Source: Octopus sinensis (lineage: Eukaryota). Taken from it: DNA of 64,000 nt. A program made the translations under genes and the position numbers. Shown one piece after another: positions 26,763 through 56,561 of this stretch. The notes under the pieces were generated by a model, which did not search any database, had not been told where the DNA came from, and was given only the letters and a program-made list of their open reading frames with translations. The DNA is taken from assembly GCF_006345805.1 (NCBI RefSeq), contig NC_043018.1, positions 5,766,001 to 5,830,000 of the forward strand, given 5' to 3'. How positions within the stretch are numbered: the first letter of the stretch is position 1; each line of letters opens with the position of its first letter.

Positions 26763-27275
26763 TTAATAATAATCCTGTCCCCACTGAGTACTGGATTCCG
26801 GGATTTTTAATCCTAGTTTCTTATGTATATTTAGTGCAAGGAAGTGGGAACGAGAGTTCAAATTTTTGGTTTTCTCGATTACTTGCTGGTAAGGGGAAAT
26901 GGCTTTTGTTCCCATGACAACGTGACCTAGTTTAGAGTCTATTTTAGCATCGAGTCGGGCATGTCGGATCAAATTGACAATCCACTGTTCAGCGGCATCG
27001 GGTGTCATGTTCAGCTTCTGCGACAGCATGTTGATGCTGATGCATTCGTGGATCCGACAGAAAATCTCAAAGATGAGGAGACGGGCGTTCTCAATGAACT
27101 CGTTTACGAGATTGCTCAAGAAGAAATCGTAGCAAAGAACAGATTCACATTCAAGAAGTTTATGCTGGGCACCATCGAAATCAAAATTGACATAGAGACA
27201 TTCAATAAATTCGGTGATGGGGTCTCTGTAGGAATAACTCTCTTGTTGGATCACTTTGACCAAATCCTTGAGAAC
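26763..27275 (-). CDS. EIF3E: eIF3e-like paralog A, terminal exon, distal duplicate copy
   Basis: Translation identical to 27948-28460, offset 1185 bp, with its own acceptor. Followed by minus-strand AATAAA at 26562-26567. Confidence 0.75.
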
Positions 27276-27947
27276 CTATAAATAAAAAATAGAGATTAAT
27301 TGTTAATTACAAAAACCAACCAAAAACAAAAAAAAACACTGACCAAAGACAAAAAAAAATTTAATTTAGTTATAAATTTAGTAATAAAGGCTCGATAAGC
27401 TAAACGAAAATGAAGATTTGGGTCCTACTTTGAGCAATACTCTTTTACTTGTTTCAGTCATTTGACTGCAGCCATGCTGGAGTACCGCCTTTTAGTTGAG
27501 CACATCGACCCCAGGACCTATTCTTTGGAAGCCTAGTACTTATTCTATTGGTCTCTTTTGCTGAACCGCTAAGTTACGGGGACATAAACACACCAGCATT
27601 GGTTGTCAAGCGATGTTGGGGGCTCAAACACAGACACACAAACATATACTCTCCTTACTTGTTTCAGTCATTTGACTGCAGCCATGCTGGAGCACCGCCT
27701 TTAGTCGAGCAAATAGACCCCGGGACTTATTCTTTGGAAGCCCAGTACTTATTCTATCGGTCTCTTTTGCCGAACCACTAAGTAATGGGGACATAAACAC
27801 ACCAGCATCGGTTGTCAAGCAATGCTAGGGGGACAAACACAGACACACACACACAATATATATATATAAATAGATAGATAGATACATCGATACATAGACA
27901 GACAGATACGTAGATAATATATTAAGTATCCGTCATTTTCTCAAATA

Positions 27948-28460
27948 TTAATAATAATCCTGTCCCCACTGAGTACTGGATTCCGGGATTTTTAATCCTA
28001 GTTTCTTATGTATATTTAGTGCAAGGAAGTGGGAACGAGAGTTCAAATTTTTGGTTTTCTCGATTACTTGCTGGTAAGGGGAAATGGCTTTTGTTCCCAT
28101 GACAACGTGACCTAGTTTAGAGTCTATTTTAGCATCGAGTCGGGCATGTCGGATCAAATTGACAATCCACTGTTCAGCGGCATCGGGTGTCATGTTCAGC
28201 TTCTGCGACAGCATGTTGATGCTGATGCATTCGTGGATCCGACAGAAAATCTCAAAGATGAGGAGACGGGCGTTCTCAATGAACTCGTTTACGAGATTGC
28301 TCAAGAAGAAATCGTAGCAAAGAACAGATTCACATTCAAGAAGTTTATGCTGGGCACCATCGAAATCAAAATTGACATAGAGACATTCAATAAATTCGGT
28401 GATGGGGTCTCTGTAGGAATAACTCTCTTGTTGGATCACTTTGACCAAATCCTTGAGAAC
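27948..28460 (-). CDS. EIF3E: eIF3e-like paralog A, terminal exon (PCI/winged-helix), proximal copy
   Basis: tttatag|[26 protein letters not shown]...[17 protein letters not shown]...WGQDYY*. With exon 1 it gives 442 aa (human eIF3e is 445 aa). Confidence 0.9.
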
Positions 28461-29044
28461 CTATAAATAAAAAATAGAGATTAATTGTTAATTACAAAAA
28501 CCAACCAAAAACAAAAAAAAACACTGACCAAAGACAAAAAAAAATTTAATTTAGTTATAAATTTAGTAATAAAGGCTCGATAAGCTAAACGAAAATGAAG
28601 ATTTGGGTCCTACTTTGAGCAATACTCTTTTACTTGTTTCAGTCATTTGACTGCAGCCATGCTGGAGTACCGCCTTTTAGTTGAGCACATCGACCCCAGG
28701 ACCTATTCTTGGAAGCCTAGTACTTATTCTATTGGTCTCTTTTGCTGAACCGCTAAGTTACGGGGACATAAACACACCAGCATTGGTTGTCAAGCGATGT
28801 TGGGGGCTCAAACACAGACACACAAACATATACTCTCCTTTACTTGTTTCAGTCATTTGACTGCAGCCATGCTGGAGCACCGCCTTTAGTCGAGCAAATA
28901 GACCCCGGGACTTATTCTTTGGAAGCCCAGTACTTATTCTATCGGTCTCTTTTGCCGAACCACTAAGTAATGGGGACATAAACACACCAGCATCGGTTGT
29001 CAAGCAATGCTAGGGGGACAAACACAGACACACACACACATATA

Positions 29045-30456
29045 TATATATATATTATATATATATATATTTATATATATATATATATATATATACGACA
29101 GGCTTCTTTCAACTTCCGTCTACCAAATCCACTCACAAGACTTTGGTCGGCCCGAGGCTATAGTAGAAGGTACTTGCCCAAGGTGCCATGCAGTGGGAAC
29201 GAACCCGGAATCATGTGGTTGGTAAGCAAGCTACTTATCATACAGCCACTCCTGCGCAATGTTTTTAAGTTTTTTACAACATTGATTTTGTGCATGATCG
29301 AAAGAAATCCTTTTCCAAGAGATAAAACTTGTATCTTCTCCAGCCACTCAAGGACTGTATCTTGTGAAAGATGATAGAAGACACTGGGAAATTTCTTTTG
29401 TTTAGAAAGGAAATTATCATCATTTTAATGCCCATTTTTCTATTCTTGCTTGGGTCAGATGGAGCTTACTGAGGTAAATTTTCTATGGCCAGATATCCAT
29501 CCTGTTGCCACCCCTCACCTGCCCCCCCCCATGACCAGGAGCATTCTTGCAAGATACTGGACATGAACGACACTGCTTCTATGACAGTGACACTCTTTTA
29601 CAACCATCAAACAATGACAAAACAAAAAGACACAAACTAATACACACACACTTATTACCTATATCCTTCCATGTTTTCATTAGGAAGGGCATCCAGCCAT
29701 AGAAACCATGCCAGAACGGAACAAGGAGCCTGACCTGCTCCTGTCAAACTGTCCAAATCTCAAGTGCAAATTTGAAATAAAAAAGGGCAGACAACTCCAA
29801 GGCAAATCAATGATATTGGCTCTCAAGCCCAAAGATAAGCATATCGAGTTTGAAGATACACTAAGCCACTTATTAGAGACAATGGACAACTCAACTCTCT
29901 CTCTGCTGAGGATAAATGGATCAAATTTTAGAACACTGTCATACAAAGTCTCAAGGAAAATAGAATGCAAACACCAAGACTGGTTTGATGAGAATGAAGA
30001 TAAAATAGCATAATTGTTAAACAGGAAGTAACAATTACATCCAAAGTTTCTGGCAAACAAATACACAGGCTTATGAATCAGTATATAGTAGTTGTCATCT
30101 ATTAAAGAAAAGCCTTTGCACTGTGGAAAACGAGTGTTTTCAGCAATGAGCTACTTATGAAATATACAACCTGGCTAAGACAAAAGACTTTAGTATTTAA
30201 ACTGACCGTATCCGGTCAAAATATCTATCATCATTTAACCCTTTCATTACTCACTTTTACACTTTTAGTTGTTTCAGTCATTTGACTGCGGCCATGCTGG
30301 AGCACCGCCTTTAATCGAGCAACTCGACCCCCGGGACTTATTCTTTTTATAAGCCCAGTACTTATTCTATCGGTCTCTTTTGCCGAACCGCTAAGTAACA
30401 GGGACATAAACACACCAGCATCGGTTGTCAAGCAATGCTAGGGGGACACACAACGC

Positions 30457-30496
<40 letters not shown>

Positions 30497-31880
30497 ATAT
30501 ATATATACGACAGGCTTCTTTCAACTTCCGTCTACCAAATCCACTCACAAGACTTTGGTCGGCCCGAGGCTATAGTAGAAGGTACTTGCCCAAGGTGCCA
30601 TGCAGTGGGAACGAACCCGGAATCATGTGGTTGGTAAGCAAGCTACTTATCATACAGCCACTCCTGCGCAATGTTTTTAAGTTTTTTACAACATTGATTT
30701 TGTGCATGATCGAAAGAAATCCTTTTCCAAGAGATAAAACTTGTATCTTCTCCAGCCACTCAAGGACTGTATCTTGTGAAAGATGATAGAAGACACTGGG
30801 AAATTTCTTTTGTTTAGAAAGGAAATTATCATCATTTTAATGCCCATTTTTCTATTCTTGCTTGGGTCAGATGGAGCTTACTGAGGTAAATTTTCTATGG
30901 CCAGATATCCATCCTGTTGCCACCCCTCACCTGCCCCCCCCCATGACCAGGAGCATTCTTGCAAGATACTGGACATGAACGACACTGCTTCTATGACAGT
31001 GACACTCTTTTACAACCATCAAACAATGACAAAACAAAAAGACACAAACTAATACACACACACTTATTACCTATATCCTTCCATGTTTTCATTAGGAAGG
31101 GCATCCAGCCATAGAAACCATGCCAGAACGGAACAAGGAGCCTGACCTGCTCCTGTCAAACTGTCCAAATCTCAAGTGCAAATTTGAAATAAAAAAGGGC
31201 AGACAACTCCAAGGCAAATCAATGATATTGGCTCTCAAGCCCAAAGATAAGCATATCGAGTTTGAAGATACACTAAGCCACTTATTAGAGACAATGGACA
31301 ACTCAACTCTCTCTCTGCTGAGGATAAATGGATCAAATTTTAGAACACTGTCATACAAAGTCTCAAGGAAAATAGAATGCAAACACCAAGACTGGTTTGA
31401 TGAGAATGAAGATGAAATAGCATAATTGTTAAACAGGAAGTAACAATTACATCCAAAGTTTCTGGCAAACAAATACACAGGCTTATGAATCAGTATATAG
31501 TAGTTGTCATCTATTAAAGAAAAGCCTTTGCACTGTGGAAAACGAGTGTTTTCAGCAATGAGCTACTTATGAAATATACAACCTGGCTAAGACAAAAGAC
31601 TTTAGTATTTAAACTGACCGTATCCGGTCAAAATATCTATCATCATTTAACCCTTTCATTACTCACTTTTACACTTTTAGTTGTTTCAGTCATTTGACTG
31701 CGGCCATGCTGGAGCACCGCCTTTAATCGAGCAACTCAACCCCCGGGACTTATTCTTTTTATAAGCCCAGTACTTATTCTATCGGTCTCTTTTGCCGAAC
31801 CGCTAAGTAACAGGGACATAAACACACCAGCATCGGTTGTCAAGCAATGCTAGGGGGACACACAAACGCATATATATATA
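29045..31880. repeat. Direct tandem duplication, unit ~1412 bp
   Basis: ORF offsets 31092-29680 = 31120-29708 = 1412; substitutions seen include gataaaata/gatgaaata and actcgacc/actcaacc. Confidence 0.9.
29760..30040 (+). mobile_element. RTE LINE APE-RT linker remnant (duplicated at ~31172-31452)
   Basis: KHQDWFDENEDKI resembles the RKHQDWFDEND motif of RTE ORF2 linkers (compare NPDWFN at ~44700). Confidence 0.55.
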
Positions 31881-32220
31881 TATATATATATACGACGGGC
31901 TTTTTTTTTCAGTTTCTGTCTACCAAATCCACTCACAAGGCTTTGGTCGGCCTGAGGCTACAGTAGAAGACACTTGCCCAAGGTGCCATGCAGTGGGACT
32001 GAACCCGGAACTGTATTTATTTTGAGATGCTCTGTTTTACTCTCAGTTATTTTAAATATAACAAAGAATTTAGTAAAATAACTTAGTTATCATTCAGCTA
32101 GTGTTAGGAATATTAATTGTGACTAAGGTTTGGTGGAAAATTTTAATTCAAAACTTATGAAAGCAAGACATTTGTACTACAGAGCCAGAGGCGGTTTCAG
32201 CCAGGTTGGTAACGAAAGGG
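31651..32220. mobile_element. piggyBac-type MITE split by a SINE insertion (~31663-32001)
   Basis: Left end TTAA|CCCTTTCATTAC at 31647-31662; body resumes ctgtatttattttgagatg at ~32001; right end GTAACGAAAGGG|TTAA at 32220. Confidence 0.8.
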
Positions 32221-33037
32221 TTAACGTCCATTTTCTACGCTGGCATGGGTTGGATGGTTTGATACGGAGCTAGCCAGCCGGGGAGCTGTCCAGACTCAAA
32301 TTGTCTGTTGTGGAATGGTTTATATGGTTGGATGTCCTTCCTTATGCCATCCTCATTAGAGTGTGTGCTGGGTGCATTTATGCAGTAGTGGCACAAGTGC
32401 ATTTCATGAGGCTCTGCATGTTTTATGTCCTAACTGCCAGATCCTACCTCTCACGGCTACCCTACAATGTTATACTAAAAATAAACCCCGCCCCATTTTT
32501 TTCATATTAGATTCTGAAATAATTGTAATATTCAACATCAAAAATGCATTTATATAAAATTTTATTTAAAAAAAAAATATCCGTTTAATCTTTTATGATT
32601 TACTTGCACCAACAAATAAACCCCAGTACTTATTATTTTTTTGTAATAAGTACCTGGCACTTATTCTATCGGTCTGTTTTGCTGAGCTGCTAAATTACGG
32701 GGATGTAAACACACCAACACTGGTTTTCAAGCAGTGGTGGGGGACAAACACAGACACAAAGACACATACACAAACAATGGACTTCTTTCAGTTTCCATCT
32801 ACCAAATCTACTCACAAGGCTTTGGTCGGGCTGAATATATAGTAGAAGGCACTTGCTCAAGATGCCACTCATTGGGATTGAACCCGGAACCATGTGGTTG
32901 GGAAGCAAACTTCTTATCACACAGCCACGCCGGCGCCTACAAGTTATACAGAACAAGGTCAGGTGAAGTACCCACAATGTAATTTCTGCTTTATATATTT
33001 GTATCTGAAGTCACAAATATCTTAAAATAGATATCCA

Positions 33038-33610
33038 GAATCTTTCCGCTTTGACCGGCAGATTTTTAAAATAATTTCTTTGTAACTAAAAACTTTTAAA
33101 CTTCGTATACTGGTAGAATGTGTCAACTGCAAATAATTGTTGTTGACAAAGATCCGGAGATATTGTATTCACCTCAATAGACGTTATTGATTGGTTGAAA
33201 TTGCCGAAATGCAAGAAATTAAACAACAAATAGCTTACAAACTACAGAATTGTCACCCATAATTATGACCCTAGTATCGATCTATTACATTTCAATCTGT
33301 TTTACGGTTAGGGTTAGGGGTGGGGGGAAGGATATATTTTTTTTCTTCAGAAATGTAAATAAACCCAATCTGTTTCTTAAACGAGGGACATATTCATACA
33401 GCACAGAATGATTTTCACCTCAATAGACGTCATTGATTGGTTGAAATTGCAGAAAAACAACAACAAATATCTTACAAACTATAGAATTTTCTCAATAAAG
33501 CCAAGAGAAAAAGATGTCTTATAAACACACTCTACCAGTATACGAAGTTTAAAAGTGTTTAGTTACGTGGAAATTATTTAAAAAATCTGCCGTTCAAACC
33601 GAAAAGATCC
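33038..33610. mobile_element. GGATCTTTTCGG-TIR MITE family copy
   Basis: Same TIRs; perfect 8-bp TSD GATATCCA (33030-33037, 33611-33618). Confidence 0.85.
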
Positions 33611-36600
33611 GATATCCACACTTATCTTTTAAAATAAAATCGCGATTTTTCAGAAAGTAACGAGGAAACTAAGGCAGGGGAGACACACCCACATCTGTCG
33701 TTATATCGAATCAGTTTTATTTCCAGCCAATTTCAGGAAAAAGTGGGAAAAAAAGTGTTAAAAGGGACATAACTCGTATTAGTTCTGTAGTGCTTTCCAA
33801 ACCTTGTGGGAGGTGATCCATCAAGCGGAACACTTGCCTTTGCCTCTGTTGGAAGCAAAGCAGTCACAGAGATGCTGATATTGATTGCAGCTGCTACAGT
33901 TGCAGTGACGGACTGACTGCCACGTGCACCTGACAGTGCGGAGAATATCTAAAGTCAGGTCAGTCGCAATCTGTAGTGCAAGGCAAGATGAATTGACTGC
34001 ACAAGCTCCACGTCCGCCCTCCCAAACTACATCACCTGCCAGAACGAATCAATACATATGCTGTTTTAACCCCAGGTCGATCCCGGCGGAAGAATCCCCC
34101 CACCCTACATCATGTAATTACCGTTGGGTTGGCAGATAAATTCGTTCGCTTTTCTTCTAAATCTTTTTAATCCTTTCCATCGTTATGTGATGATTCACAT
34201 AATACACGAAAAATGTTTTTATCGTAGTAATTTTTTTTTTTTGCTTTATGCTTCCTCTATATAGTTTTTTTTTAATTTTAATAAATGGTGCCCCAGCATG
34301 GCCGCGTCCTTCGGGCTAATACATTTTTAAGGATTTAAGGATCATATGACGATGGAGAGCCAATCTTTAACTTGTTTCCGTTTACGAACTGCGGCACTAC
34401 TTTGAAGGGTTTGGCCGAACAAAGCGACCTTAGTAATTATTTTAAAGCCTAATATTTATTATATCGGCCCCGTTTTGCTGAAACGCAATGTTACGGGGAC
34501 GCAACCAAACCCACATTGGTTATCGAGCGGTTAACGGGACAAAGAAAGACACACACGACGGGCTTGTTTCAGTTTCTGTCTACCAAATCCACGCACAAAG
34601 CTTTGGTCATGCGGGGTTATAGCGTACGAGACATGCCCAAGGTACTACACGCAGCGGGACTGAACCCAAACAGACAAAAAAAAAAAAAAATCGAGTTTAT
34701 CTGACAACCTAAAACATTCAATGCAGATTTAAATATCAAAAGGATTTTTTTTTTACTGTAGGGTAAATGTGGCTGCTCTTTTTAGCAAGTCGAATGACCA
34801 TATAGAAGAGGTTCCTTCGTAGAATCTCAGTCGGGGTTGGAAAAATGGCAGTAAAGCATCGAAATCAGCTGATTTTCGCTATGCGCTATCTGAGTGCGAC
34901 GGAGGTAAAGAATAAGCACACAACCAGTATTCGGCGTAACAAAAACCCTAACCCTTCTCCCCGAGTACTTCAAATCTGTTTCTCTCAGTAAAGTAGCAGT
35001 TTAGCCCCAAGTCAGCCCTAATTGAGTGGGTGTGTGTGTGTGTGTGAGCTATAATTAGAGGCATTCCAGCCGTGGCTATCTCAGCTTTTAATTTTTTTTA
35101 ATGTCAATGTTTTCTTTCCTTAAAGTTGGTTAAATTAGTTTAGGGAATCTGCTTGCTATTTCTAGCAGCTCCAGCGATTCTGTGAAGACTCTCTAAGTCT
35201 AAGTAACATCGTCGACTTTATCTCGTATCTGAGAACTTAGTTTCTTTGCTGACCGCTTCCTTTAGGGAGATAGCATCGATGACCATGTAAACCAATTCTT
35301 GCCTAGAAGAGTCGATGGCACTGAGTGCAAGGTAATGTTGGAAGACGAGGTTGATTTTATCGAGTTTTTCTTTCCTGTCGTTTGATTCTTCCTTTTCTCT
35401 TCTTGTAGCTTTCGAAGATGGTTTCGGTGGTGATGGAACACCGCCACTTGGTACGGTCTCGGGCTTGTGTTTCAAACGATACAGGCTAAAGTTCAGTGGC
35501 TTTGAGTGTTGTTTTGAGCTGATACCTGTGTCTTCGAAAAGGGCAAACCCCTGGTCTTTTCCTTGAAGTGAGCCCGCTGACGTAGGAACCTCGACTCTTC
35601 CATTCTTGTTCCATGTCCAGATCATCGAAGACGATGTTTCATGATCAGCGATTCGATGCTTTGACTGTTGGCAAGCCGATTACATCGATCCCACTAGTCA
35701 ACTGCTATCTTATTTTATCGACTCCGAGAAGATGAAAGGTTGACCTCCATGAGATTTGAACTCAGAACGTAAAGACCTAGAAGAAATGCCTCTAAAGCAT
35801 TTTGTCCGATGCGCTAATGGTTTCACTGGCTTACTACCTTTATTAACGAGAAAATAAAATCAAGTCTGTATCCAAAAGGTAATATTCTTTCCCACAGTGT
35901 TGGACAACTTTAAAAAGGAAACTTATCCGGTCCCTTTTCTTAAATTTTTTATCAACCTATATAAAAAAAACCAAAAACTATTGGTTAAGATCCGTACTAG
36001 TCCTGACCAAAGAAATCTACGATTGAAGACTTTCCAGCAGTGGTGACCCGATTTTTTCTCTAGACATTGTATCTTAACACATTAACCAATATGTCTTTCT
36101 ATCATTTCAGTTCCGAGTTCAGAGGTTTCACTTTCTGGATCATAAAACGAAAGATCTTTTTTTTTTTTTTGCTTAAAAAAATATTACCGTGTACTTTGAG
36201 GTAGATCTTTACTATTTCCAACAGGTGAAAATGACTAAATAAATAAAAACCCCATCGTTTGCAATGTTATATGGTAACGAGCATATTTCTTGACTTCACA
36301 ACTTGACTGTGCACAATAAAATATACAGCACAAGTCACCACATGTATGAGAAAATCTCTCAACAAAGGCAGCAAAATTTATTCCCAATTTTCCCCAACCG
36401 TCTTAAAAATTACCGAATATAACTCGATAACTCGATCCAGAATATATTTATCAGGTAAAAAAATAATTGGATTTATATGAAAGGTGGAAATGTCCAGACA
36501 CAGCACAAACCCGTCAAAGATAGGTGTGCAATGAAGAATAGGGTTAGGGTATTTCTACACAAGCGAACATCCCCGCCCCATCGACTTTGTTTCCTCATAA

Positions 36601-37840
36601 TTTTCAGAAAAATAGATATTTTTGAATTAAATTTTTACCAAATTCGTTTCAAATGGTGTTAATTATGATTATATCGGCATTTAATGTAAAAAGAAAATAG
36701 TTGATGGTTGCACATGTATACATACTGACAAACATCACATTTTTATTTTCTAAATTTCACAAATATTTCGTGTATGATCTCAAAACGTAAGACTTTCTCA
36801 CCTTCCCGAACGTCAAACTAATACACCCGCTTGTTGTTTATCCACCTGTCTTCGGGTTTTGTTTTCTATAAATTTCAACTATGATATATATATATATATA
36901 TATACGTGTGTGTGTATACAATGTTTTCAGTAAGTATGTGTGTTCGTCCACTAATTAAAAAAAATACAAGTGAATTAATTTCCGATATAACCCTAATCTA
37001 CACCTTCTGAGAGGTATCTCCAGAAAATTTCATTTAAAAGTATCCCAATTTTTCTAAAAGTTATGAGGAAATAAAGTCAAGTGGGAGGGGTACACTTTTG
37101 TAACTATGTCACAGTTGGAACAATGTGAAAGCTGGGAACATCCAGAGACAGTACAAGTCTGTGGAGAGATAGCTATGCAATGAAGAATGATGCCTTAAAT
37201 ATCACAAAATCATAAGTGTCATAGACATCTTAGGAATACGTTACCAAGGTATGATATCTAATTAATAAGTTGAAACTGTTATTACTCATTAGTGTATATG
37301 CAAATGTGTGTTTAGATGTAGATTATTATTTAGTTACCGCGATTTCTTTTGGCCAGATGCACAAGAGATCCATTTGGGTGCCTGAAGATGAGGGGGGAAA
37401 AATCGAATGGAATCTGGTATTTTGCGGTTAATATATTTTAACGATCGTGCACCTAACGACACCAATTTAAACGTCACAAGACATTGAAAAACCATCTCAC
37501 CAGCTCGGCATTCCCAGTTGCTGCATAATCACTCAGCTCAACCCCTTTAATTGATAATTAAGCAGATTTACGATCAGACAATCCAACTACGACCATGCCA
37601 TTTAATTTTTTCACGCGTAGTGTCTCTAGAACGACGTTATCCATCATTTTTTGACATGATAGGAGGCGATCTGAAGGAAATTTGGCTGCTATTTCTAGAA
37701 AGTTTCTAACGACTACAGAGGCGCCTTAAATTGCACGTATCAATTCCCGTATTTTTAGTGAGATGAACACATTTCCTGGAACGCAGATTATTTAATCTAT
37801 TTCTAATATAATTAGAATGTTTTCCCCTTCTAAGCTATCA

Positions 37841-38150
37841 TTTAAGATCGTAGCAGGGAGTTGAGGAAGATTTGACTGTTATTTCTAGCAAGTCTACCGA
37901 CTACAGGGGTGCTCTGAATGGCTCGTGTCACTTCCCGTATTTTTAGTGAAATGAACACATTTCCGAGAATGTAGTCCCCTTCTAAGCTATTATCCAATGT
38001 ATCCCCTCTCATTTAAGATCGTAGCAGGGAGTTGAGGAAGATGTGACTGTTATTTCTAGCAAGTCTACCGACTACAGGGGTGCTTTGAATGGCTCGTGTC
38101 ATTTCCCGTATTTTTAGTGAGATGAACACATTTCCTAGAATGTAGTATTT
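37841..38150. repeat. 171-bp tandem duplication near the 5' end of the eIF3e-A intron
   Basis: tttaagatcgtagcagggag at 37841 and 38012; a more diverged third unit at ~37660-37790. Confidence 0.8.
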
Positions 38151-38279
38151 TCAATCTACTTATATTCTAACTAAAACGTCTTTTCATGAGTAAGTCATAT
38201 GTAATATTGTATAAATTAATTAGATCGACCATAGTTTCGTTTAAAATGAAATAAAAAAAGAATAAGTGTGTCAACTCAC

Positions 38280-39095
38280 CGATCTTCGGCGACTCTTGTT
38301 GATAATAACAGCTGTGGTTAGGTATCGAAGAATATGAGGACATACAGTTTGTACCGTATTGAGATAAGGTGGTTGATAAAGAAGTAGGTCTATGACGAGG
38401 TCCAGACCATCTCGATGTTTGAAGAAGACGAACAGGGACCAGTGAACGAACCAGGTTCTCTGCTGTAAGGTCTGCAAGGCTGGCCAGAAAGAGGCGTTGT
38501 TGTCGATATATTCTCTCAACCTGTTTAATTCTTCGAGAGCCGTGTCGAAGTTTTCTAGAAGAATTTCAGAAGCCAGGATACCCCACAGTGAATTGAGGTA
38601 GAGCTTGTCATTAGTTGGTAGTAGGGTACTGACAAAGTAGAGATATTGACTAGTGAATTCATAGTTTCCACATTCGAACTGGTATTTGGCATAATTGTAC
38701 ATGTCTTCTGTAATATTTTCGCTGATGCCGTGACGAGTGACGAGGTATTCATACAAATGACTACCATCTCGCACAGTTTCAATTTGGTTTATAACCTCAG
38801 GGAGATTCATCAATTTTGAAATGTTTTCAACACGAGATTCCAATATTTCCAGTTGTTCCAACACGCTTTCTCTTTCTTCTTGAAAACTTTTGCTTATATC
38901 TTGTGAAGGATACATTTTGTCGTGTAGATTTTTGGCGTAATCTACCATCTTAGTCTTCTTAATTAGCTCCAGTTTTCCACGCAGTATTTGTTTTTCATCG
39001 AATATCTTCTGGGAATGTACAAATTCCAAGAGTTTCAGCATTAAATGCGGATCTAAATACTGTGAAAACCGGCTGAGCAGATCGAAGTTCGACAT
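38280..39095 (-). CDS. EIF3E: eIF3e/INT6-like paralog A, exon 1 (272 codons)
   Basis: MSNFDLLSRFSQYLDPHL...YAKYQFECGNY...LASEIL...LQQRTWFVHWSLFVFF...CPHILRYLTTAVI are eIF3e motifs. Ends TCG|gtgagt (phase 0). Confidence 0.93.
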
Positions 39096-42918: not shown

Positions 42919-42957
<39 letters not shown>

Positions 42958-44122: not shown

Positions 44123-44155
<33 letters not shown>

Positions 44156-44224
44156 GGATTTCGTAGACAGGAACTGAAACAAATCAATTGTATATATATG
44201 TATGTATATAAGTGTATGTGTTTT

Positions 44225-45995: not shown

Positions 45996-46319
45996 AGAGG
46001 GAAATAACCCTCATCTGCAGATGATGATGAAATTCGAAACATAGTTATTCCAGTTCATTACAGAAAAGTCTAATTCTTCAATTGAATATAACCAAGCAAC
46101 ACCGGGTATCTCTGCTAGTATATATATATATATATACACAACGGGCTTCGTTCTGTTTCTGTCTACCAAATCCACTCACAAGGCTTTGGTCGGCCCGAGG
46201 CTATAGTAGAAGACACTTGCCCAAGGTGCCACGCAGTGGGACTGAACCTGGAACCATGTGGTTCGTAAGCAAGCTACTTACCACACAGCCACTCCTGAGG
46301 ACAGTTGCATCAAGAACTG

Positions 46320-46740
46320 CCAATCTCTAATTGTAAAGGGAACATGTCGAAGGGGTAAACCTAGGAAGATGTGGGATGAAGTGATAGGAAAGGATCTACA
46401 AACGTTAGGACACACAGAGGGGATGACAGGGAACTGAGACACTCAGTGGTTTGCTGTGCTTGAAAAGACACATCAAAAGCCTATTAAAATCATGGTTGCC
46501 CTTGCACACAGGCTTGTTCCTTGCAACCCTCCAGCTGAGCATCTCTAATCTTGCCGATCGTGGGTACTGGTGCCATGTAAAAAGCACCTATGCTGGTCAC
46601 CCAGTACGCTCTGTAGAGCGGTTAGCATTAAGAAGGGCATAGAAACCATGCCAAAACACACATGGAGCCTGAACAGCCCTTCAGCTCCTGTCAAACCATC
46701 CGACCCATGCCAGCATAGGGACGTTAAATGATGATGATAA
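46320..46740 (+). mobile_element. 3' remnant of the PHD-RTE family
   Basis: VKGTCRRGKPRKMWDEVIGKDLQTLG is homologous to 15160-15240; ends with acgttaaatgatgatgat tail. Confidence 0.7.
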
Positions 46741-47279
46741 CGAGTCTGAGTTTGCAGTTGTCTGAAGATTTATCGGTGAAATTTGATATATGGAAACTAT
46801 TGAAACCCCCTCAAAGGGACCTGTCCTGTTTTTGAGAGGTGGAATTTGTTGTGATGCCCTGTTTAAACCACCATCTGGTTCTTGGATGCCATTAGCAGGG
46901 TCCACTTTATTGTGAGTATAGGTCTTTAGTTTGAGAATAAGTTCCTACATGTCTCAGACAGTCTGAAAAGGGTTATACTTACCTGAGCCCTTTTCTCCCT
47001 ATGGACCATAAGCCAATAACAACTTCTCTCTACTTGACCTGTTTTTTCTAATTTTGTTCATTTGGATCCCCTCTTTTCAGATCTGCTTCAGTATCCCTCC
47101 CCTAGCTATTCTTAGGATGTCCTCTCTTCTGCATCCCTTGTTAGTTCCAGGTAATGTTTTCCTGAGGGAAAGCACATGGTACAGTAGTTACAGCATCGGG
47201 CTCACAACCATGAGGTTGTGAGTTCAATTCAGGGATCGGACTGTGTTGTGTTCTTGAGCAAGATGCTTCATTTCACATT

Positions 47280-47364
47280 GCTTATGGTGCTCCTGGACTG
47301 TCTGACTTTTATATTGCTGGATTCTTGTAAGAATTAATTTTGTTGCTATATTTCATTTTTTCTT
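47280..47364 (+). pseudogene. Orphan inverted fragment of heparanase exon 6 3' end plus donor site and start of intron 6
   Basis: gcttatgg[cggtgg deleted]tgctcctggactgtctgact(c>t)ttatattgctggattctt|gtaagaattaatttt matches the reverse complement of ~815-905. Confidence 0.85.
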
Positions 47365-49126
47365 GTTATGTATTTTAATTTTTTTGTTTTGTTTTGTATA
47401 GACATATATAAGAGGTAGTAGTTCAGTTCCCAGACTGGGCTGTGTGTTGTGTTCTTGAGCAAGACGCTTTATTTTTCATTTCTCCAGTTCACTCAGCTGT
47501 AGAAATGAGTTGCAATGTCACTGGTGCCAAGCTGTTGTCTTGGAGCTGTTGACGTTACTGCTTTGAAGGATGTATTCGCTCTTGGTAACTGTTTATTAAG
47601 TGAAGGTGATGTCCAGTGTGTCTAGGATTCCATGTAGATAACTAACTTGTGGAAAGGACCAAGGTGGATGACCAGATGACAGGCAAGCTGGCAGAAACGT
47701 TAGCACGCTGGGCGAAATGCTTAGCAGTATTTCGTCTGCTGTTATGTTGTGAGTTCAAATTCCATGGAGGTCGACTTTGCCTTTCATCCTTTCGGGGTCG
47801 ATAAATTAAGTACCAGTTACGCACTGGGGTCGATGTAATTGACTTAATACCTATGCCTGTCCTTGTTGGTAATAGAGAAATAGGTTGTTAACACTGCTGA
47901 GTATGGGTGGCTTCAATTTAAGACCAGACAGAAGAGAAACAATGATGGGGTGGTTATATTCATGTCTATAGAACTCCTGTCCATCACTCACTACATTTCA
48001 CCTCCAATCATCAGGTACTCTTCCCCCATACTCTTACAACTGCTCCCCCCACCATCTCATGATCTACTGCCTGTATCATCTCTTGCTTCCTGAAGGTTTT
48101 GCTTTGGTACTCCATCACCACAAGCCTATCTTTTTCCCTTATACTCTCACACGCCCAGGGTAGCCATGTATCTTTAGCTTGTCCTTGTTAATAAAATTCA
48201 CCTTTCTACCCCTTCAAATACACCACCACCACAATTTAGTTTCTTTTTCCCTTTCTTGTTTTCCATGTTACTTGGCAAATCCCACTAGTGCTGGTGGCAC
48301 ACACACACACAAAAAAAAAAAGCACGCAGTGATGATGATGATGATCATCGTTTAACATCCGCTTTCCATGCTAGCATGGGTTGGACAATTTGACTGAGGA
48401 CTGGTGAACCAGATGGCTGCACCAGGCTCCAATCTGATCTGGCAAAGTTTCTACAGCTGGATACCCTTCTTAACGCCAACCACTCCGAGAGTGTAGTGGG
48501 TGCTTTTACATGCCACCAGCATGGGGGCCAGTCAGGCAGTACTGACAACGGCCACACTCAAATGATGTTTTTTATGTGCCACCTGAACAAGATCCAGTCC
48601 AGCAGCACTGGCAATGACCTCGCTTGAATGTTTTTTCACGTGCCACTAAGGCGACACTGGTAACGATCACGCTCAAATGATGCTTTTTATGTGCCACCAG
48701 CACGGAAGCCAGTTTGCTGCTCTGGTAACAATCACGCTCAGATGGTGCTCTTAGCGCTCCCCTAGCACAGATGCCAGTCATCAAATTTGATTTCGATTTC
48801 ACTTGCCTAAACACAGCAAAAAATGGTTGGCATTAGGATGAGCATCCAGCTGTTAAAACCATGCTGAAACTGACTTGGAGCAAGCATGATGGTGCCCTGT
48901 AGCTCACCAGATCCTATCATACTGACCCTGCCAACCCATGCCAGCATAGAAAACAGACATAAAACAACTATGAACCTTAGCATTAACATTATAAGAATAA
49001 ACTAACTTTTGTTAAAAATCAAAATGTGATTGTATACTGAACTTGCTTGTATGAAATTGAAGTAAAAACACTGAAATTAAAAAGGAATTCAAAAGCCCAA
49101 TGTATTTATTTATTTATTGTTTATAT

Positions 49127-49180
<54 letters not shown>

Positions 49181-49232
49181 ATACACACATATATATGTTC
49201 ATAAATTTACTGTACATTTGTAAATTTTTATA

Positions 49233-49739
49233 TTAATCCTGTCCCCACTGAGTGCCAGATTCAGGGAATTTCAATCCTAGTTTCTTATGTATATTTAGTG
49301 CAAGGAAGTGGGAACGAGAGTGCAAGTCTTTGGTTTTCTGGATTACTTGCTGATAAGGGGAAATGGCTTTTGTTCCCATGACAACGTGACCTAGCTTTGA
49401 GTCTATTTTAGCATCGAGTCGGGCATGTCTGATCAAATTGACAATCCACTGCTCGGCAGCATCGGGTGTCATGTTCAGCTTCTGCGACAGCATGTTGATG
49501 CTGATGCATTCGTGGATCCGACAGAAAATCTCAAAGATGAGGAGACGGGCGTTCTCAATGAACTCGTTTACGAGATTGCTCAAGAAGAAATCGTAACAGA
49601 AGACGGCTTCGCATTCCCGTAGTTTTTGCTGGGCACCATCAAAATCAAAGTTGACATAGAGACATTCAACGAACTCAGTGATGGGGTCTCTGTAAGAATA
49701 GCTCTCTTGTTGAATGACTTTCACCAAATCCTTGAGAAC
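49233..49739 (-). CDS. EIF3E: eIF3e-like paralog B, terminal exon (PCI domain)
   Basis: ttttcag|[47 protein letters not shown]...WGQD*; 440 aa total. Tandem minus-strand AATAAA signals at 49105-49118. Confidence 0.92.
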
Positions 49740-49964
49740 CTGAAAATACAGAGAGAAAGGGGAGGAAAAAAAAACAAAAACATATTGTTTAAAAATTTAC
49801 AAAGGTTATTACAGATGATTTGCTGGTCAGGAAATTGAACTGGTTATCACCTTAACACACATGTATCAGAATATTTTCAATGAAGGCATAAGAAATTTCA
49901 AAACTACATTTGTAAATCTATCTCAATTCAGACAGAGTAGCTAATTTTTTATATTTATTATTTA

Positions 49965-50308
49965 CTAGCAGTATCGCCCGGCATTGCTCGGGTTTGTAAG
50001 GGAAATAACTATATAAGCATTTTTAGAAAGTTATAGCCAAAAAGTAGCAAAAAAAAGTAATTAAAAATGGAAAAAAATTATGGTAATTTTTTTTAAAAAT
50101 CGTTGACTCATCGTAGACATTTTTAGAGAGTTACTTCCCTTATATAATAGCGAAAAAATGCATTAAAATGAAAAAAAATTATGGTAAATTTTTTTTTAAA
50201 TCGTAGACATGCGCTAATACCCAGAATCACTGCACCGCAAAATGTGGGAGTAGTTAGGAATCTAAATCGTAGGAGACAGACACACAACTTCACTTTTATA
50301 TATAAAGA
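49965..50308 (-). mobile_element. Non-autonomous Helitron (family also at 61903 and 63751)
   Basis: A|TCTTTATATATAAAAG start; 3' GC-rich palindrome-like gcaatgccgggcgatactg then CTAG|T; no TSD. Confidence 0.8.
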
Positions 50309-50360
50309 TATATGCTAGAAATAGCAGTCATCTCTTCATCATTTTAAAGTTTTCCTTTAA

Positions 50361-50582
50361 CCCTTTCGTTACCGTATTTATTTTGAGATGTTCTGTGTTT
50401 CATTCAATTAATTTTAATTATAACGAGGAATTTAGAAAAAGAACTTAGTTATCATTAGGCTAGTGTTCAGAACATAAATTGTGACTAAGGTTTGGTGGAA
50501 GATTTTAATTCAATATTTATGAAAGTAAGACATTTGTACTACAGAGCCAGAAGCGGTTTTGGCCGGGTTGGTATCAAAAGGG
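50361..50582. mobile_element. piggyBac-type MITE (same family)
   Basis: TTAA|CCCTTTCGTTACC ... GGTATCAAAAGGG|TTAA; body homologous to 41166-41370. Confidence 0.85.
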
Positions 50583-50754
50583 TTAATGCTTGCATAGTTC
50601 AGATGGAATTCACTGAAACAATTTTCTTTGGTCTGACGCCATTCCTGTGGCCAAACATTTTGGTTAAAGGCTAATCAGATAGGCATCTGACTGTCTCAAA
50701 ACACCAGAGATTTGCGCCTGGAGAATTTTGTGCCAGCTGCGGCTGTACAGATCC

Positions 50755-51460
50755 ACATTCAATTCAATTTTTATTGGCTCAAAAAGCAAGGCCATGTAAG
50801 GGGACAGGGAGTTATGTACAGGGAGGGTGGTCATACAAAGAGTGCAGGCCATTTCTGGTCAAGAGAAACTTTGAACCGAGCGGTCGCCGGAATCTTCACT
50901 ATCTTGTCAGGCAGCTTATTCCACGGATCCGCAACCCGGACGGAGAAAGCCCTTCTCCTTTGATTGAGATGAAATCGACGTAGATAGAGCTTTTCGGAGC
51001 AGGAGTGAAGAACAGCTCTTTCGAGAGGTTACACTTTCTGCTTATGATGTTGTGAGCAAGAATGAGATCACCATGGTGTCGTCGTTTTTCGAGAGAATAA
51101 AGGTCGAGCGTCTTCAGCCTTTCTTCATAAGACAAATGCTTGAGACCAAGAACCATGCAGGTAGCCAGCTTCTGGACTCTTTCGAGATGATGTATGTCTT
51201 TGAGGAGATAAGGAGAAGAGACTTGACTCCCGCACTCTAATATGGGTCTCACCAGCGTGACATAGAGCGGTAGGAATATGGCTGCTGTGAGCATTCCGAA
51301 TGACCGTCGGATCAAAAACAGAACTCCATGTGCTTTGTTGGCAGCATGGATGCATTGGACCAAAGGCGAAAAGGAAGAATCCACCAAGATACCCAGGTCC
51401 TTTACTTGGTCGGTCTTCTCCAGCAGCAGACGACCCGGCTCGAAATCAAGTTGCTCTCCA
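50755..51460 (-). mobile_element. CR1-group LINE 3' fragment
   Basis: VKDLGILVDS...LYVTLVRPILE...HLERVQKLAT...LSYEERLKTLDLYSLEKRR.GDLI is a CR1-type RT C-terminus. Confidence 0.88.
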
Positions 51461-52954
51461 TTGGTGTTGCTGAGTTTTTTCTCTGAGCCACACTTTTCCT
51501 CGGTGGCAGGTTTCAGTTTCTCTTCCCTCACCTCCACCTCCTTGCATAATACTAATCAGTTACATAATAAAATTACCAGTTCCAGTCAAACTGTCTAACC
51601 CATGCCAGCATGGAAAGCAGACGTTAAATGATGATGACAATCCTGATTCCAATTAGATTTAGATTTTAGGTTTCTTTTTAAAATCTAAATTTGAGTTTGT
51701 ATGTCTTAATATCTGGCATAATGCCACCTTCTCTACTACAACCTCATTCAGTTGAGTGTCTTTTCTTAGTCTGGCAAGCAGTGGTGTAACTGGGGGGCAC
51801 GAGCCCCGGGCGCTGATTGAAGGCGGGGGCTGCAGAATTGACCATAATACAATAAGCTTGAATTCCATTTATAAAATTTATAAAAGCAAGCATTCAAAAA
51901 ATATACTTTGGATTACATGCTCTACCGAACCAGCAGGCAAATGAACCCCGGTAAAGTATTTATTCCTAAAATATTGCTTCAAAACAGTAATTACTAGTAA
52001 TAAATAAGTACTATTTAATATCGTGGATTTTGAAATTGGGGGGCATCAGTCAACTAGGACCTTGGTCTGTCATGAGCCCTATGACTCATATGGTCGGAGC
52101 TAAACCCAGTTGAATGGTAGACTTAATCCGTTGCTCAATTTAGCACTACAACCTGATTCTTGGGTGCTTTTGGTGGGGGGTCCACTCTGTTGCAAGAATT
52201 CGAACCCTATCTCCAGACAGAGGAGAACTTTCTCATACGAGTTTTGTGCTCTTCTTCCTTACGGAGCCATTACAAAAATATCTGGACAGTAGACTAGGCC
52301 AAGATTTACAAATATTTACACCACTTGGTTTTGGGAAATTTTAAAAGAACAGAAGAATGGTAGTATTGCCATTTCTGTCTTTTAAATAAAGAAGCAGGAT
52401 TAAAAGGCATACCTACACAAGTGTGCCCCTCCTAAGTGTAATCTAAACCAACTGAAAGGTATTTATCTTTTACTAGACTGCAGCAATGCTGAGGCACCAC
52501 TTTGAAGAATCTTTAGTCAGTAGTGGCTGTGTGGTAAGAAGCTTGCTTCTCAACCACAGGGTTCCCGGTTCAGTCCCAATGCTTGGCACCTTGGGCAAGT
52601 GTCTCCTACTATACCCTTGAGCCAACCAAAGCCTTGTGAATGGATTTGGCAGATAGAAACTGAAAGAAGCCTGTCATATATATTGCCAGCCTCGTCTGGC
52701 CCCCGTGCCGGTGGCACATAAAAAGCACCATCCGATCGTGGCCATTTGCCAGCCTCGTCTGGCACCTAGCAGGTGGCACATAAAAAGCACCCACTACACT
52801 CTCGGAGTGGTTGGCGTTAGGAAGGGCATCCAGCTGTAGAAACACTGCCAGATCAGACTGGGCCTGGCGCAGCCTCCTGGCTTCCCAGACCCCAGTTGAA
52901 CCGTCCAACCCATGCTAGCATGGAAAACGGACGTTAAACGATGATGATGATGAT

Positions 52955-52987
<33 letters not shown>

Positions 52988-53638
52988 GTATTCTTGTCTG
53001 GGTTTGTCCTCCAACCATTACTTGACAACCGATGTTGATGTGTCTATGTTCCCATAACTTAATGGTTCAGCAAAAGAGACCTATAGAATAAGTACTAGGC
53101 TTAGTGTTCAACTAAAGGTGGTGCTCCAGCATGACCACAGTCAAATGACTGAAACAAGTAAAAGAATGAAAGAATAAACGTACTGCCCCCCCCCCCCAGC
53201 ACTTACTATTTTCAAAGCCTGGTAATTAAGAACTTGTACAAATACACCACGAGTGATAGTGATAATAATAATCCTTTCTACTAAAGGCACAAGGCCTAAA
53301 ATTTTAGAGGAGGGGACTAGTCGATTACATCAACCCCAGTGTTTCACTGGTACTTATTTTATGAACCCCGAAAAGATGAAAGGTAAAGCTGACCTCAGAA
53401 CGTAGCGACAGATGAAATACCTATTTCTTTACTACCCACAAGGGGCTAAACACAGAGAGGACAAACGGATTACGTCGATTACATCGACCCCAGTGTGTAA
53501 CTGGTACTTAATTTATAGACCCCGAAAAGATGAAAGGCAAAGTCGGCCTCGGCGGAATTTGAACTCAGAACATAACAGCAGACGAAATACAGCTACGCAT
53601 TTCGCCCGGCGTGCTAACGTTTCTGCCAGCTCACCGCC

Positions 53639-54400
53639 TTAACCCTTCCGTTCCTGTATTTATTTTGAGATGCTCTGTGTCTATTTCAATTATTTAAAAT
53701 ATAACAAAAGACTTTAGTAAAATAACTTAGTTATCATTAAGCTAGAGTCAGAAACATAAACTGTGACTAAGGTTTGGCGGAAGATTTTAATTCAGAACTT
53801 ATAATAATAATGGTTTCAAATTTTGCTACAAGGGCAGCAGTTTTGGTGGGAGGGATGAGTCATTTACATCGCCCCAATGATCAACTGGTACTGATTTTAT
53901 CAACCTGAAGGATAGAAAATAGAGTGGACTTCAGCAGAATTTGAACTCAGAACATAAACAGCAGACGAAATACAGCTACGCATTTCGCCCGGCGTGCTAA
54001 CGTTTCTGCCAGCTCACCGCCTTAACCCTTCCGTCCTGTATTTATTTTGAGATGCTCTGTGTCTATTTCAATTATTTAAAATATAAAAAAAGACTTTAGT
54101 AAAATAACTTAGTTATCATTAAGTAGAGTCAGAACATAAACTGTGACTAAGGTTTGGCGGAAGATTTTAATTCAGAACTTATAATAATATGGTTTAAATT
54201 TTGCTACAAGGGCAGCAGTTTTGGTGGGAGGGATGAGTCATTTACATCGCCCCAATGATCAACTGGTACTGATTTTATCAACCCTGAAGGGATAGAAAAT
54301 AGAGTGGACTTCAGCAGAATTTGAACTCAGAATGCTAAGACGGAAGAAATACCGCTAAGCATTTTGCCCGGCGCGCTAACGATTCTGCCAGCTTGCCGCC
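53639..54400. repeat. ~383-bp tandem duplication of a piggyBac-MITE/SINE-B composite
   Basis: ttaacccttccg at 53639 and 54022; second unit differs mainly by single-base deletions. Confidence 0.75.
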
Positions 54401-55745
54401 TTAATAACAATATTCCTTTCTACTAAAGGTAGAGGGCATGAAATTTGGTGGGAGGGGACTAGTCTTATATCGACCCCCAATGTTCAATGGTACTTAATTT
54501 ATCGACCCCCAATGTTTCGTACTTAATTTATCGACCGAAGGATGAAAGGCAAGTCGATCTCGGCGAATTTGAATCAGGAAGAGCGGCAGACGAAATACCT
54601 ATTTCTTTACTACCCACAAGGGGCTAAACACGAGAGGACAAACAAGGCAGACAAACGGATTAAGTCGATTACATCGACCCCAGTGCGTAACTGGTATTTA
54701 TTTAATCGACCCCGAAAGGCTGAAAGGAAAAGTCGACCTCATCGGAATTAGAACGAAGAGACGAAATGTCGCTAAGCATTTTGATCGGCGTGCTTACCTA
54801 TTCCACCAGTTCGCCGCCTTAAATAACAACAAGGATTTCAAAGTTTGGTACAAGGACAGCAATTTAAGAGAAATGGCTAAGTCGATTACGTCAACCACAA
54901 TGCACAACTGGTACTTATTTCGTCGCCCCCCCCCCAAGAGGATAAAGATTCAGAGTCGATCCTGGTGGCATTTGAATAAGATCCAATTTTTTTTTTTTAA
55001 AGTGGGATGGTCAAAATCATCCTAATAGAATCCGGGTGAGAACAACCAAGGGCAACAGGAGCCACTGACAGATTCCTTGAGTGAATTTATTTTGTCGCGT
55101 TTCCTTCAATGCAAACACAGTTGAAATAGAAGAATGGTGTAAAAAAGATTTGAGCAAACCCTTCTTTTTTCAAGAAGCGGGCCGCATGAGACGTACATCA
55201 TCATAAGGTGAGCCACACTATGAAAAAATAAAAAAAAATTTATAGTAATTTTTTTTTGGTTTGGCATACCATATTGAGAATCCCAGGGTCGCAAGTTGCT
55301 CACGAACTTTCTAAAACTAGAACTGACGAGATGTGAAACTCCTGGGAGTGGGGTAAGAAAAAACATGGCAACGAGGACTGACTGTGCTTCAGGCAAAGCC
55401 TAACAGAGCAACTCGTAGTCTTTTAACCGAATATGGTTCCACATGGAAACGTTCGTTGGTTCATTTATAGTATTCTCAGAATCATTACAGTGTTTCGTAA
55501 TTGTTTGTAAACAAATTCCTATACAATAAATATCGGCAATCCTAGCTTTTAGCGTACCATTTTAATTCTTAGCATAAGGTAAAATAGGTCGAAATATTGA
55601 CACACGTGTATAGGTGGTTTAATTAAGAGAGAGAGAGAGAGAGTGCGTGTGTGTGTATAGATGGAGTATGTACTTTAATTAATTAATAGGAGTTAGTATC
55701 AGACACATATTAGTTTATAATAGCATATAAATAAATATAACTAAC

Positions 55746-56561
55746 CGATCTCCGGCGACTCTTGTTGATAATAACAGCTGTGGTCAGGTATCGAAGGATG
55801 TGAGGACAAACAGTTTGGATTGTATTCAGGTATGGAGGTTGATAAAGAAATAAATCTACGAGAAGATCAAGGCCATCCAAATTGTTAAAAAACACAAACA
55901 AGGACCAGTGAACGAACCAGGTTCTCTGCTGTAAGGTCTGCAAAGCAGGCCAAAAAGCTGCATTGGTGTCGATATATTCCCTCAACCTGTTTAATTCCTC
56001 CAGGGCGGCATCGAAGTTCTGCAGAAGTATTTCTGATGCCAGGATACCCCATAATGTGTTGAGGTAGAATTTGTCGTTGGTTGGTAGGAGAATACGCACG
56101 AAATAGAGATATTGGCTGGTGAATTCGTAGTTACCGCATTCGAACTGGAACTTGGCGTAGTTGTACATGTCTTCTGTAATATTTTTACTGATATCATGAC
56201 GAGTGGTGAGATATTCGTACAACTGGCTTCCATCTCTGAAATTACTGATGGTCTTCATAACTTCAGGATCGTTCATTACTTCAGCGATTTTCTCGACCCG
56301 TTCCTTGAGTTTTTTATCTTCGGCCAAGACACGATTTAAGTTCTCGTGGTAACTTTTGGGGATGTCTTGCAACGGGTAGAGATCGTGATGAAGGGTTATG
56401 GCATAACGGGCCATCTTAGTTTTACTGATAATTTCTAGTTTCCCTCGAATTAATTCTTTATTGTCGTACACGTTGTTGTCGGACAGGAATTCCATGAACG
56501 GTAAGATGAGATGCCGGTCGAAATACTGCGACAAACGGTTAGTTAAATCAAACAGTGCCAT
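55746..56561 (-). CDS. EIF3E: eIF3e/INT6-like paralog B, exon 1 (272 codons)
   Basis: MALFDLTNRLSQYFDRHLILPFMEFL...YAKFQFECGNY...LQQRTWFVHWSLFVFF...AVIINKSRRRS|gttagt. Same length and intron phase as paralog A. Confidence 0.93.

Follow-up and report, generated by a model that had tools for sequence, protein, structure and literature searches.

eIF3e (INT6) is normally a single-copy, slowly evolving core subunit of eIF3 (eukaryotic translation initiation factor 3), and with eIF3d it forms a module implicated in selective cap-dependent translation. Here, we examine a stretch of 64,000 nucleotides from Octopus sinensis (the window), which is 100% identical to sequence CM016880.1 of assembly GCA_006345805.1 and carries on its minus strand two complete two-exon eIF3e genes, eIF3e-B and eIF3e-A (hereafter B and A), as seen from a list of open reading frames (ORFs) and by direct reading. 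On balance, we favour the explanation that both A and B are ancient eIF3e genes in working order, and that in octopods they jointly correspond to one two-exon gene of cephalopods.

Two complete eIF3e genes

The original prediction, made from the letters of this stretch, had described two intact eIF3e reading frames of 442 (A) and 440 (B) amino acids, each with one phase-0 GT-AG intron after codon 272. Direct reading and Pfam bear this out (Table 1), with eIF3_N (PF09440), PCI (PF01399) and EIF3E_C (PF21357) all above curated cut-offs in both products. The substitutions that it listed are also present: WGKLASE has become WGILASE in both proteins, HPKGRD has become HRDGLD in A and NLDGLD in B, and DRHLVFP has become DPHLMLK in A. 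Residues 1-438 of A align collinearly with the human eIF3e chains of solved structures (E 3.7e-174), and protein searches and a tree nest A and B inside metazoan eIF3e. Compared with canonical metazoan eIF3e (human EIF3E; PDB 6ZMW, 5A5T), the octopus proteins show the same full-length collinearity, about 59% identity and the three Pfam domains, but they are encoded by two genes instead of one and by two exons instead of approximately 13. The RefSeq proteins XP_029649712.1 (A) and XP_029649713.1 (B) are identical to the window genes and already named eIF3 subunit E.

Table 1 Features of the window. Positions are those of the window; a slash marks an exon-intron boundary.
Feature	Position	Strand	Description
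eIF3e-B exon 1	55746..56561	-	ATG at 56561, 272 codons, donor TCG/GTTAGT; 100% identical to O. sinensis XP_029649713.1
eIF3e-B intron	49740..55745	-	Phase 0, GT-AG, ~6.0 kb; dispersed repeats and a 212-amino-acid ORF at 50899-51537 (no Pfam match)
eIF3e-B exon 2	49233..49739	-	Acceptor TTTTCAG/GTT; codons 273-440 and stop
Conversion-homogenised stretch of B	49140..49748	-	88% DNA identity to A 27856-28469 and 26671-27284; exon 2, 9 nucleotides of intron and ~93 nucleotides of 3' untranslated region
eIF3e-A exon 1	38280..39095	-	ATG at 39095, 272 codons, donor TCG/GTGAGT; 100% identical to O. sinensis XP_029649712.1
eIF3e-A intron	28461..38279	-	Phase 0, GT-AG, ~9.8 kb in the O. sinensis assembly; holds the 1412-bp unit twice
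eIF3e-A exon 2, proximal copy	27948..28460	-	Acceptor TTTATAG/GTT; codons 273-442 and stop; copy assigned to gene A in the source annotation
eIF3e-A exon 2, distal copy	26763..27275	-	Coding sequence identical to the proximal copy; separate 170-amino-acid product in the source annotation
1185-bp unit, twice back to back	26671-27855 and 27856-29040	.	0 mismatches; duplicates the last exon of eIF3e-A
1412-bp unit, twice	29056-30467 and 30468-31879		Two mismatches; adjoins the 1185-bp pair
SINE-like repeat, example copies	27446-27855, 28630-29040, 30268-30468, 31680-31880, 57902-58119		~200 nucleotides
Heparanase exons (amino acids 1-340)	851..21070	-	Downstream of eIF3e-A; same neighbour in O. 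bimaculoides and O. vulgaris
Reverse-transcriptase ORF	14091-15308	+	Pfam RVT_1; weak PHD-finger match below the curated cut-off; inside a heparanase intron
Long ORF	13291-14031	+	No Pfam match
Long ORF	44648-45496	+	No Pfam match; between the eIF3e genes
Long ORF	50899-51537	-	No Pfam match; in the B intron
ORFs	58987-59778	-	Translations repeat parts of the reverse-transcriptase ORF

In O. vulgaris, the intron of B measures approximately 5.7 kb. A and B lie next to each other on one strand in O. sinensis, O. vulgaris and O. bimaculoides, which agrees with the tandem same-strand pair originally described; this arrangement holds within Octopus but not in Argonauta hians (BAAFZT010000065.1, L010), where A (10001-18334, plus strand) and B (28180-24735, minus strand) are convergent and lie approximately 6.4 kb apart. 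Hence, there has been an inversion in one lineage, that of Octopus or that of Argonauta.

The last exon of A is present twice in the O. sinensis assembly. An independent O. vulgaris assembly, 98-99% identical to the window overall, has the 1185-bp and the 1412-bp unit once each and a single A exon 2, and O. bimaculoides also has one A exon 2. Given that both units are single-copy in O. vulgaris, the duplications are likely to be assembly artefacts or a very recent event. The exon-2 duplication leaves the protein unchanged, and the 170-amino-acid product annotated beside gene A in O. sinensis is a duplicated exon, not a separate gene. The structure of gene A had thus been predicted correctly except that the distal copy of exon 2 was used and the proximal one (28460..27948) missed. 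The downstream AATAAA signals that had been reported follow the B stop (115-123 nucleotides 3' of it, near 49105-49118) and the distal A exon-2 copy (26562-26567, 196 nucleotides past the stop), and there is none within 1.38 kb after the proximal copy. A tblastn search of the window with A and B found no additional eIF3e pieces beyond the second A exon-2 copy at 27275..26763.

A repeat of about 200 nucleotides resembling a short interspersed nuclear element (SINE; core ...GGTACTCCAGCATGGCTGCAGTCAAATGACTGAAACAAGTAA...) occurs in many copies in the window. Copies lie at the edges of the duplicated units, where they could have mediated the duplications or confused the assembler.

Age, selection and mosaic divergence of the pair

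O. bimaculoides (L002), O. vulgaris (L014) and Argonauta hians have both an A-type and a B-type gene, which share the intron and its GT-AG sites, and read assemblies of a further octopod contain an A-type exon 1 whose donor is placed identically. The relative of these genes that comes closest outside octopods is a canonical-looking cephalopod eIF3e (P0002/P0143; hereafter the canonical type), known solely from assemblies of public sequencing runs, in which WGKLASE, HPKGRD and DRHLVFP are kept. A neighbour-joining protein tree has the form (canonical type,(A clade,B clade)) with 100% bootstrap at every relevant node, including the A and B clades themselves; the stem under A and B is long, as are the branches to A and to B, and those within each clade are short. 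The shared gene types and intron, together with this topology, show that the duplication predates the Octopus/Argonauta split.

The ratio of non-synonymous to synonymous divergence between orthologues (dN/dS, Nei-Gojobori) is 0.02-0.05 for A and 0.007-0.014 for B, far from 1 throughout. Between O. sinensis and O. bimaculoides it is 0.031 for A and 0.007 for B exon 1, and between O. sinensis and Argonauta it is 0.023 for A and 0.010 for B. These values show that strong purifying selection was acting on both genes before the Octopus/Argonauta split and has done so ever since, which excludes a decaying copy.

Octopod eIF3e shows unusually many changes at sites that hardly vary in other animals. 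At 177 columns conserved to at least 95% in 123 other animal eIF3e proteins, A departs 24 times, B 23 times and the canonical type four times, compared with a median of 2, a 95th percentile of approximately 8 and a maximum of 15 in the background set. Nine departures (L45I, K173I, W183F, D189E, A247T, N321Y/H, A327N, T343I and A357S) are common to A and B in both Octopus and Argonauta and not found in the canonical type, and a tenth, I217V, occurs in A, B and the canonical type.

Divergence between A and B differs sharply along the protein, with an amino-acid identity of 48% for residues 1-110, 88% for residues 111-272 and 94% for residues 273-440. In O. sinensis, exon 2 of A and exon 2 of B differ at 39 nucleotides and share an identical tract of 137 nucleotides, whereas orthologous exons 2 of Octopus and Argonauta differ at 94-97 nucleotides. 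The same holds at synonymous sites: for codons 331-385 the proportion of synonymous difference between A and B is 0.12 in Octopus and 0.09 in Argonauta, compared with 0.62-0.68 between orthologues, and for codons 1-110 the A versus B value is 0.63-0.91. In bootstrapped DNA trees, codons 1-110 cluster with their orthologues (100%), exon 2 sequences cluster within species (100%) and codons 111-273 are intermediate. Because exon 2 groups by species and not by orthology, it has undergone gene conversion (concerted evolution), independently in the Octopus and Argonauta lineages and in spite of the inversion that separates their gene arrangements. Conversion is confined to the PCI/C-terminal part and, more weakly, to the 3' half of exon 1. 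The first approximately 110 codons accordingly diverged early and stayed distinct, with the PCI/C-terminal exon repeatedly homogenised. All of the nine shared departures except L45I lie within the conversion-touched region, and they could have arisen in one copy and then been copied to the other.

Similarity between A and B at the DNA level ends within 9 nucleotides of the intron, and no non-coding similarity is seen upstream of the two genes. The approximately 93 nucleotides of 3' untranslated region that follow the stops (49140-49232 in B; 27856-27947 and 26671-26762 in A) are conserved between A and B and could be either part of the conversion tract or a conserved untranslated element.

Partial gene conversion between duplicated genes is classical in the globin genes. 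As in the globins, paralogs within one octopod genome are closer at synonymous sites than orthologues are over part of the gene. Unlike in globin-type cases, the boundary of conversion coincides with a functional module, and conversion persists in the inverted Argonauta pair.

The functional module in question is the part of eIF3e that would seat it in the complex. In complexes of PCI proteins, a subunit is anchored in the core by its C-terminal helix and by the winged-helix part of its PCI domain, and its N-terminal helices form an outer arm. The 43S structure of Kratzat et al. (PMC7780240) places the N-terminal tail of eIF3d along eIF3e helices 1-3, 7, 9, 10 and 12, and names His12, Arg16, Tyr32, Phe132, Asn164, Trp170, Gly171, Leu208 and Gln283 as eIF3e contacts, with Tyr286 stacking on eIF3c. 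When these contacts are mapped by alignment, A and B resemble canonical eIF3e in keeping W170, G171, L208, Q283 and Y286. They differ from it at K172 (99% conserved), next to the W170/G171 contact, which is Ile in both. In A of Octopus and Argonauta, R16 (96% conserved) is replaced by P and Y32 (98% conserved) by F, and B keeps both residues. Three further contacts are less informative: H12 and N164 vary and differ even in the canonical type, and the residue numbered Phe132 in the paper is a Tyr in the alignment, retained in A and B. Both proteins would enter the eIF3 core through the shared PCI/C-terminal part, kept uniform by selection and conversion, and would offer different N-terminal arms to eIF3d, the standard one in B and an altered one in A. 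The likely outcome would be two eIF3 flavours that differ in how, or whether, eIF3d docks, to which differences in expression may add.

Plain subfunctionalisation, in which A and B are biochemically equivalent, have divided the ancestral expression domains and carry inconsequential N-terminal differences, would account for the strong constraint on both genes, the retention of all domains and the conservation of most eIF3d and eIF3c contact residues in both; the lack of upstream non-coding similarity means that the promoters differ, as such a division would have it. However, if residues 1-110 were interchangeable, conversion should have homogenised them, yet they remain distinct in the two genes (48% identity). 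Each N-terminal version is moreover conserved between Octopus and Argonauta (non-synonymous difference 0.01-0.08), and the R16P and Y32F changes of A are fixed in both lineages. We therefore regard functional equivalence of A and B as unlikely, although it deserves some weight.

Origin of the two-exon gene

The canonical type is 79% identical to other molluscan eIF3e, compared with 58-63% for A. Its genomic contigs, which stem from two or more related species with 86% DNA identity when non-coding sequence is counted in, contain an uninterrupted 272-codon exon 1 followed by CAG/GTAAGT at the same position as in A and B, and a polyadenylated messenger RNA (mRNA) contig (L011) has the two parts spliced together. 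ORFs upstream of the canonical-type gene gave no synteny signal with the octopus locus. eIF3e of Haliotis rubra spans approximately 20 kb and has approximately 13 coding exons, none of which ends at the cephalopod site, the corresponding protein stretch being encoded inside one exon; the nearest Haliotis intron lies 33 nucleotides (11 codons) downstream, and the homologous sequence at the site itself reads CAA GTG. Neither A, B nor exon 1 of the canonical type has any of the approximately 12 ancestral introns of Haliotis, and the new intron is a clean insertion between codons at a CAG/GT site, phase 0, after codon 272.

The cluster listing of the canonical type also has UFC1 mixed into it. Members of 163-176 amino acids (P0141, P0144), considered as exon-2 reading frames, were rejected, as they are UFC1 and unrelated to eIF3e.

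Given that the canonical type shares the 272-codon exon 1 and its donor, the intron losses and the intron gain appear to predate the duplication, and the two-exon structure would be a property of the cephalopod eIF3e gene itself and not of a side copy. The loss of all introns at once points to an RNA intermediate. In the cephalopod ancestor, the gene of approximately 13 exons would have been replaced through RNA by a copy without any ancestral intron, either as a retrogene that displaced its parent or as a gene converted in place by complementary DNA (cDNA). The intronless copy would then have gained its single intron. The duplication that followed took place at the DNA level, before the lineages of Octopus and Argonauta parted. 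Retrogene hallmarks such as a poly(A) remnant or target-site duplications would probably be erased at such an age.

The original prediction, a retrocopy that gained one intron and was then duplicated, agrees with this history in so far as the Haliotis introns are missing and the intron site is new. The status of a side copy is not supported, given that the canonical type has the same exon 1 and donor position, and neither is the expected multi-exon parent, which is missing from the annotations of the four octopods O. bimaculoides, O. sinensis, O. vulgaris and Argonauta hians. By annotation, A and B appear to be the sole eIF3e genes in these genomes, with no third gene, and Haliotis does not share their two-exon structure.

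Retrogene replacement has been described for amphioxus SYCP1 (PMC5803294) and for human orphan retrogenes (PMC3548309), and newly evolved introns in retrogenes are the subject of a third report (PMC3565874). The octopus genes resemble orphan retrogenes in that all ancestral introns are gone at once and no multi-exon parent is found among annotated proteins, and they resemble retrogenes with new introns in having one intron at a position not shared with the ancestral-type gene. They differ in that the intron was inserted cleanly between codons and no coding sequence was intronised.

Using A and the canonical type as queries, we searched a collection of 5.8 billion proteins, in which O. bimaculoides, O. 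sinensis, O. vulgaris and A. hians are all represented by their annotations, and found no named octopod eIF3e except A and B; the cluster of the canonical type contains no NCBI-named eIF3e. Canonical-type sequences come from runs SRR30931879, SRR8281676, SRR9969973, ERR129213xx, ERR123703xx and ERR148571xx, octopod A-type sequences come from SRR118693xx, and among the octopod runs examined the canonical type and the A/B type never occur in the same run. Exact-protein look-ups retrieved A and B only from the NCBI assembly and no transcript contigs, which is uninformative as octopod runs are apparently sparsely sampled. From this distribution of sequences, A and B are very probably the only eIF3e genes of octopods, and the canonical type very probably belongs to other cephalopods. 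We prefer to see A and B as co-orthologs that took the place of the standard gene, and not as a specialised family added to it.

Such a family, with a canonical multi-exon eIF3e elsewhere in the octopus genome and A and B as additional retrogenes specialised for, for example, the germline or the nervous system, would fit the finding that A and B are the most divergent eIF3e proteins of the set at conserved positions, given that such divergence is most readily tolerated where a standard copy exists or used to exist. The long stem branch ahead of the A/B split and the existence of canonical-type sequences without species assignment also fit it. Nevertheless, the annotations of four octopod genomes, of which two are from RefSeq, list no further eIF3e, the canonical type has the exon 1 and donor of A and B and hence is not a multi-exon parent, and the two types do not co-occur in any run examined. 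Many of the shared changes sit in conversion-homogenised regions, and as conversion could have spread them, no third, standard gene is needed to explain them. An added family is thus improbable.

Several points weigh against the replacement of the standard gene as set out here. The placing of the canonical type in non-octopod cephalopods is drawn from run accessions only, and the absence of a third octopod gene from annotation and a partial sampling of runs. Canonical-type genomic DNA shows exon 1 and its donor only, with the remainder assumed to be a single exon, and intron positions were set against those of a single non-cephalopod, Haliotis. On these data, retroposition elsewhere in the genome and cDNA-mediated intron loss in place are both possible. 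Finally, the eIF3d argument carries human contacts over to octopus by alignment, and Y32F is a conservative change.

Gene models, surrounding sequence and implications

Both genes are annotated already, but their models are faulty in two of the four annotations of octopods examined here. The O. vulgaris model CAI9739021.1 (1343 amino acids; OX597835.1, L014 3001-66347) is three genes fused, namely B, A and heparanase, and splices out of each eIF3e exon 2 after ...SPYQQ. O. bimaculoides RefSeq (CM046622.1, L002 10001-27309) has one gene, in which 'isoform X1' is A and 'isoform X2' (XP_014777263.1) joins B exon 1 to A exon 2; these 'isoforms' in fact represent two separate genes. An assembly gap, a run of Ns (L002 12757-13304) directly before the remaining part of B exon 2, takes up the 5' half of that exon, and isoform X2 is probably a consequence of this gap. 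Literature searches found no paper on cephalopod eIF3e paralogs or retrogenes. Protein-cluster listings mix heparanase into the octopus eIF3e cluster, which is explained by the fused O. vulgaris model.

Taken at face value, the two faulty models could instead reflect one complex transcription unit, in which alternative first exons (B1 or A1) are joined with a choice of last exons; with every exon junction in phase 0, chimeric mRNAs would be in frame. This is very improbable, given that the O. bimaculoides chimera is probably a workaround for the gap, that to each exon 1 belongs a separate exon 2 ending in a stop, with AATAAA after the B stop and after the distal A copy, and that the Argonauta genes lie on opposite strands, where no common transcript is possible. 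That one copy is silent or decaying, or that the pair is an assembly artefact, has next to no probability: perfect, artefact-like duplications do adjoin gene A in the O. sinensis assembly, but A and B differ by 28% in exon 1 protein, both are present in four independent assemblies and in raw-read assemblies, and both frames are intact in all species examined with dN/dS of at most 0.05.

The ORFs at 13291-15308, 44648-45496, 50899-51537 and 58987-59778 are possible retroelement remnants. Between 56.7 and 64 kb, where ORFs of at least 50 amino acids were read without a domain scan, several ORF translations repeat those of the SINE-like repeat and of the reverse-transcriptase ORF, and no exon was recognised of the histone-deacetylase gene, the upstream neighbour of B in O. 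bimaculoides.

Initiation-factor paralogs are known from other lineages, such as eIF3e-A and eIF3e-B of teleosts and Xenopus, eIF4E and eIF4G of Drosophila and the eIF3e- versus eIF3m-containing eIF3 of S. pombe, and the names E-A and E-B appear among the protein-search matches for eIF3e. As in these cases, octopods retain a core factor in two versions that could define alternative complexes. Unlike teleost and Xenopus eIF3e-A and eIF3e-B and the like, the octopod pair stems from a local DNA duplication and not from a whole-genome duplication, and unlike other initiation-factor paralogs its copies are mosaic, with a conversion-homogenised core and a divergent N-terminal arm.

This one locus combines three processes, namely a probable replacement by an intronless copy followed by gain of a new intron, an ancient duplication and gene conversion confined to a module. 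Each is already known singly and the pair is a lineage-specific duplication of a known gene, but the combination is unusual. In practical terms, the analysis provides corrected annotation in O. bimaculoides, O. vulgaris and O. sinensis.

eIF3d is a cap-binding subunit used for selective translation, and two eIF3 types that differ in its docking would thus amount to a gene-encoded switch between modes of mRNA selection. Tentatively, and with a rather low probability, we propose from the sequences that octopods, lacking a standard eIF3e, build two eIF3 holocomplexes with a common core fit and different eIF3d-docking arms, in which the A type (R16P, Y32F) binds eIF3d weakly or differently and serves as a switch in mRNA selection, possibly in the nervous system or germline. 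If so, octopods would run two divergent versions of eIF3e whose sole sustained difference is the eIF3d-docking arm and, if they truly lack a standard eIF3e, they would serve as a natural experiment on the scope for variation in the eIF3e-eIF3d interface.

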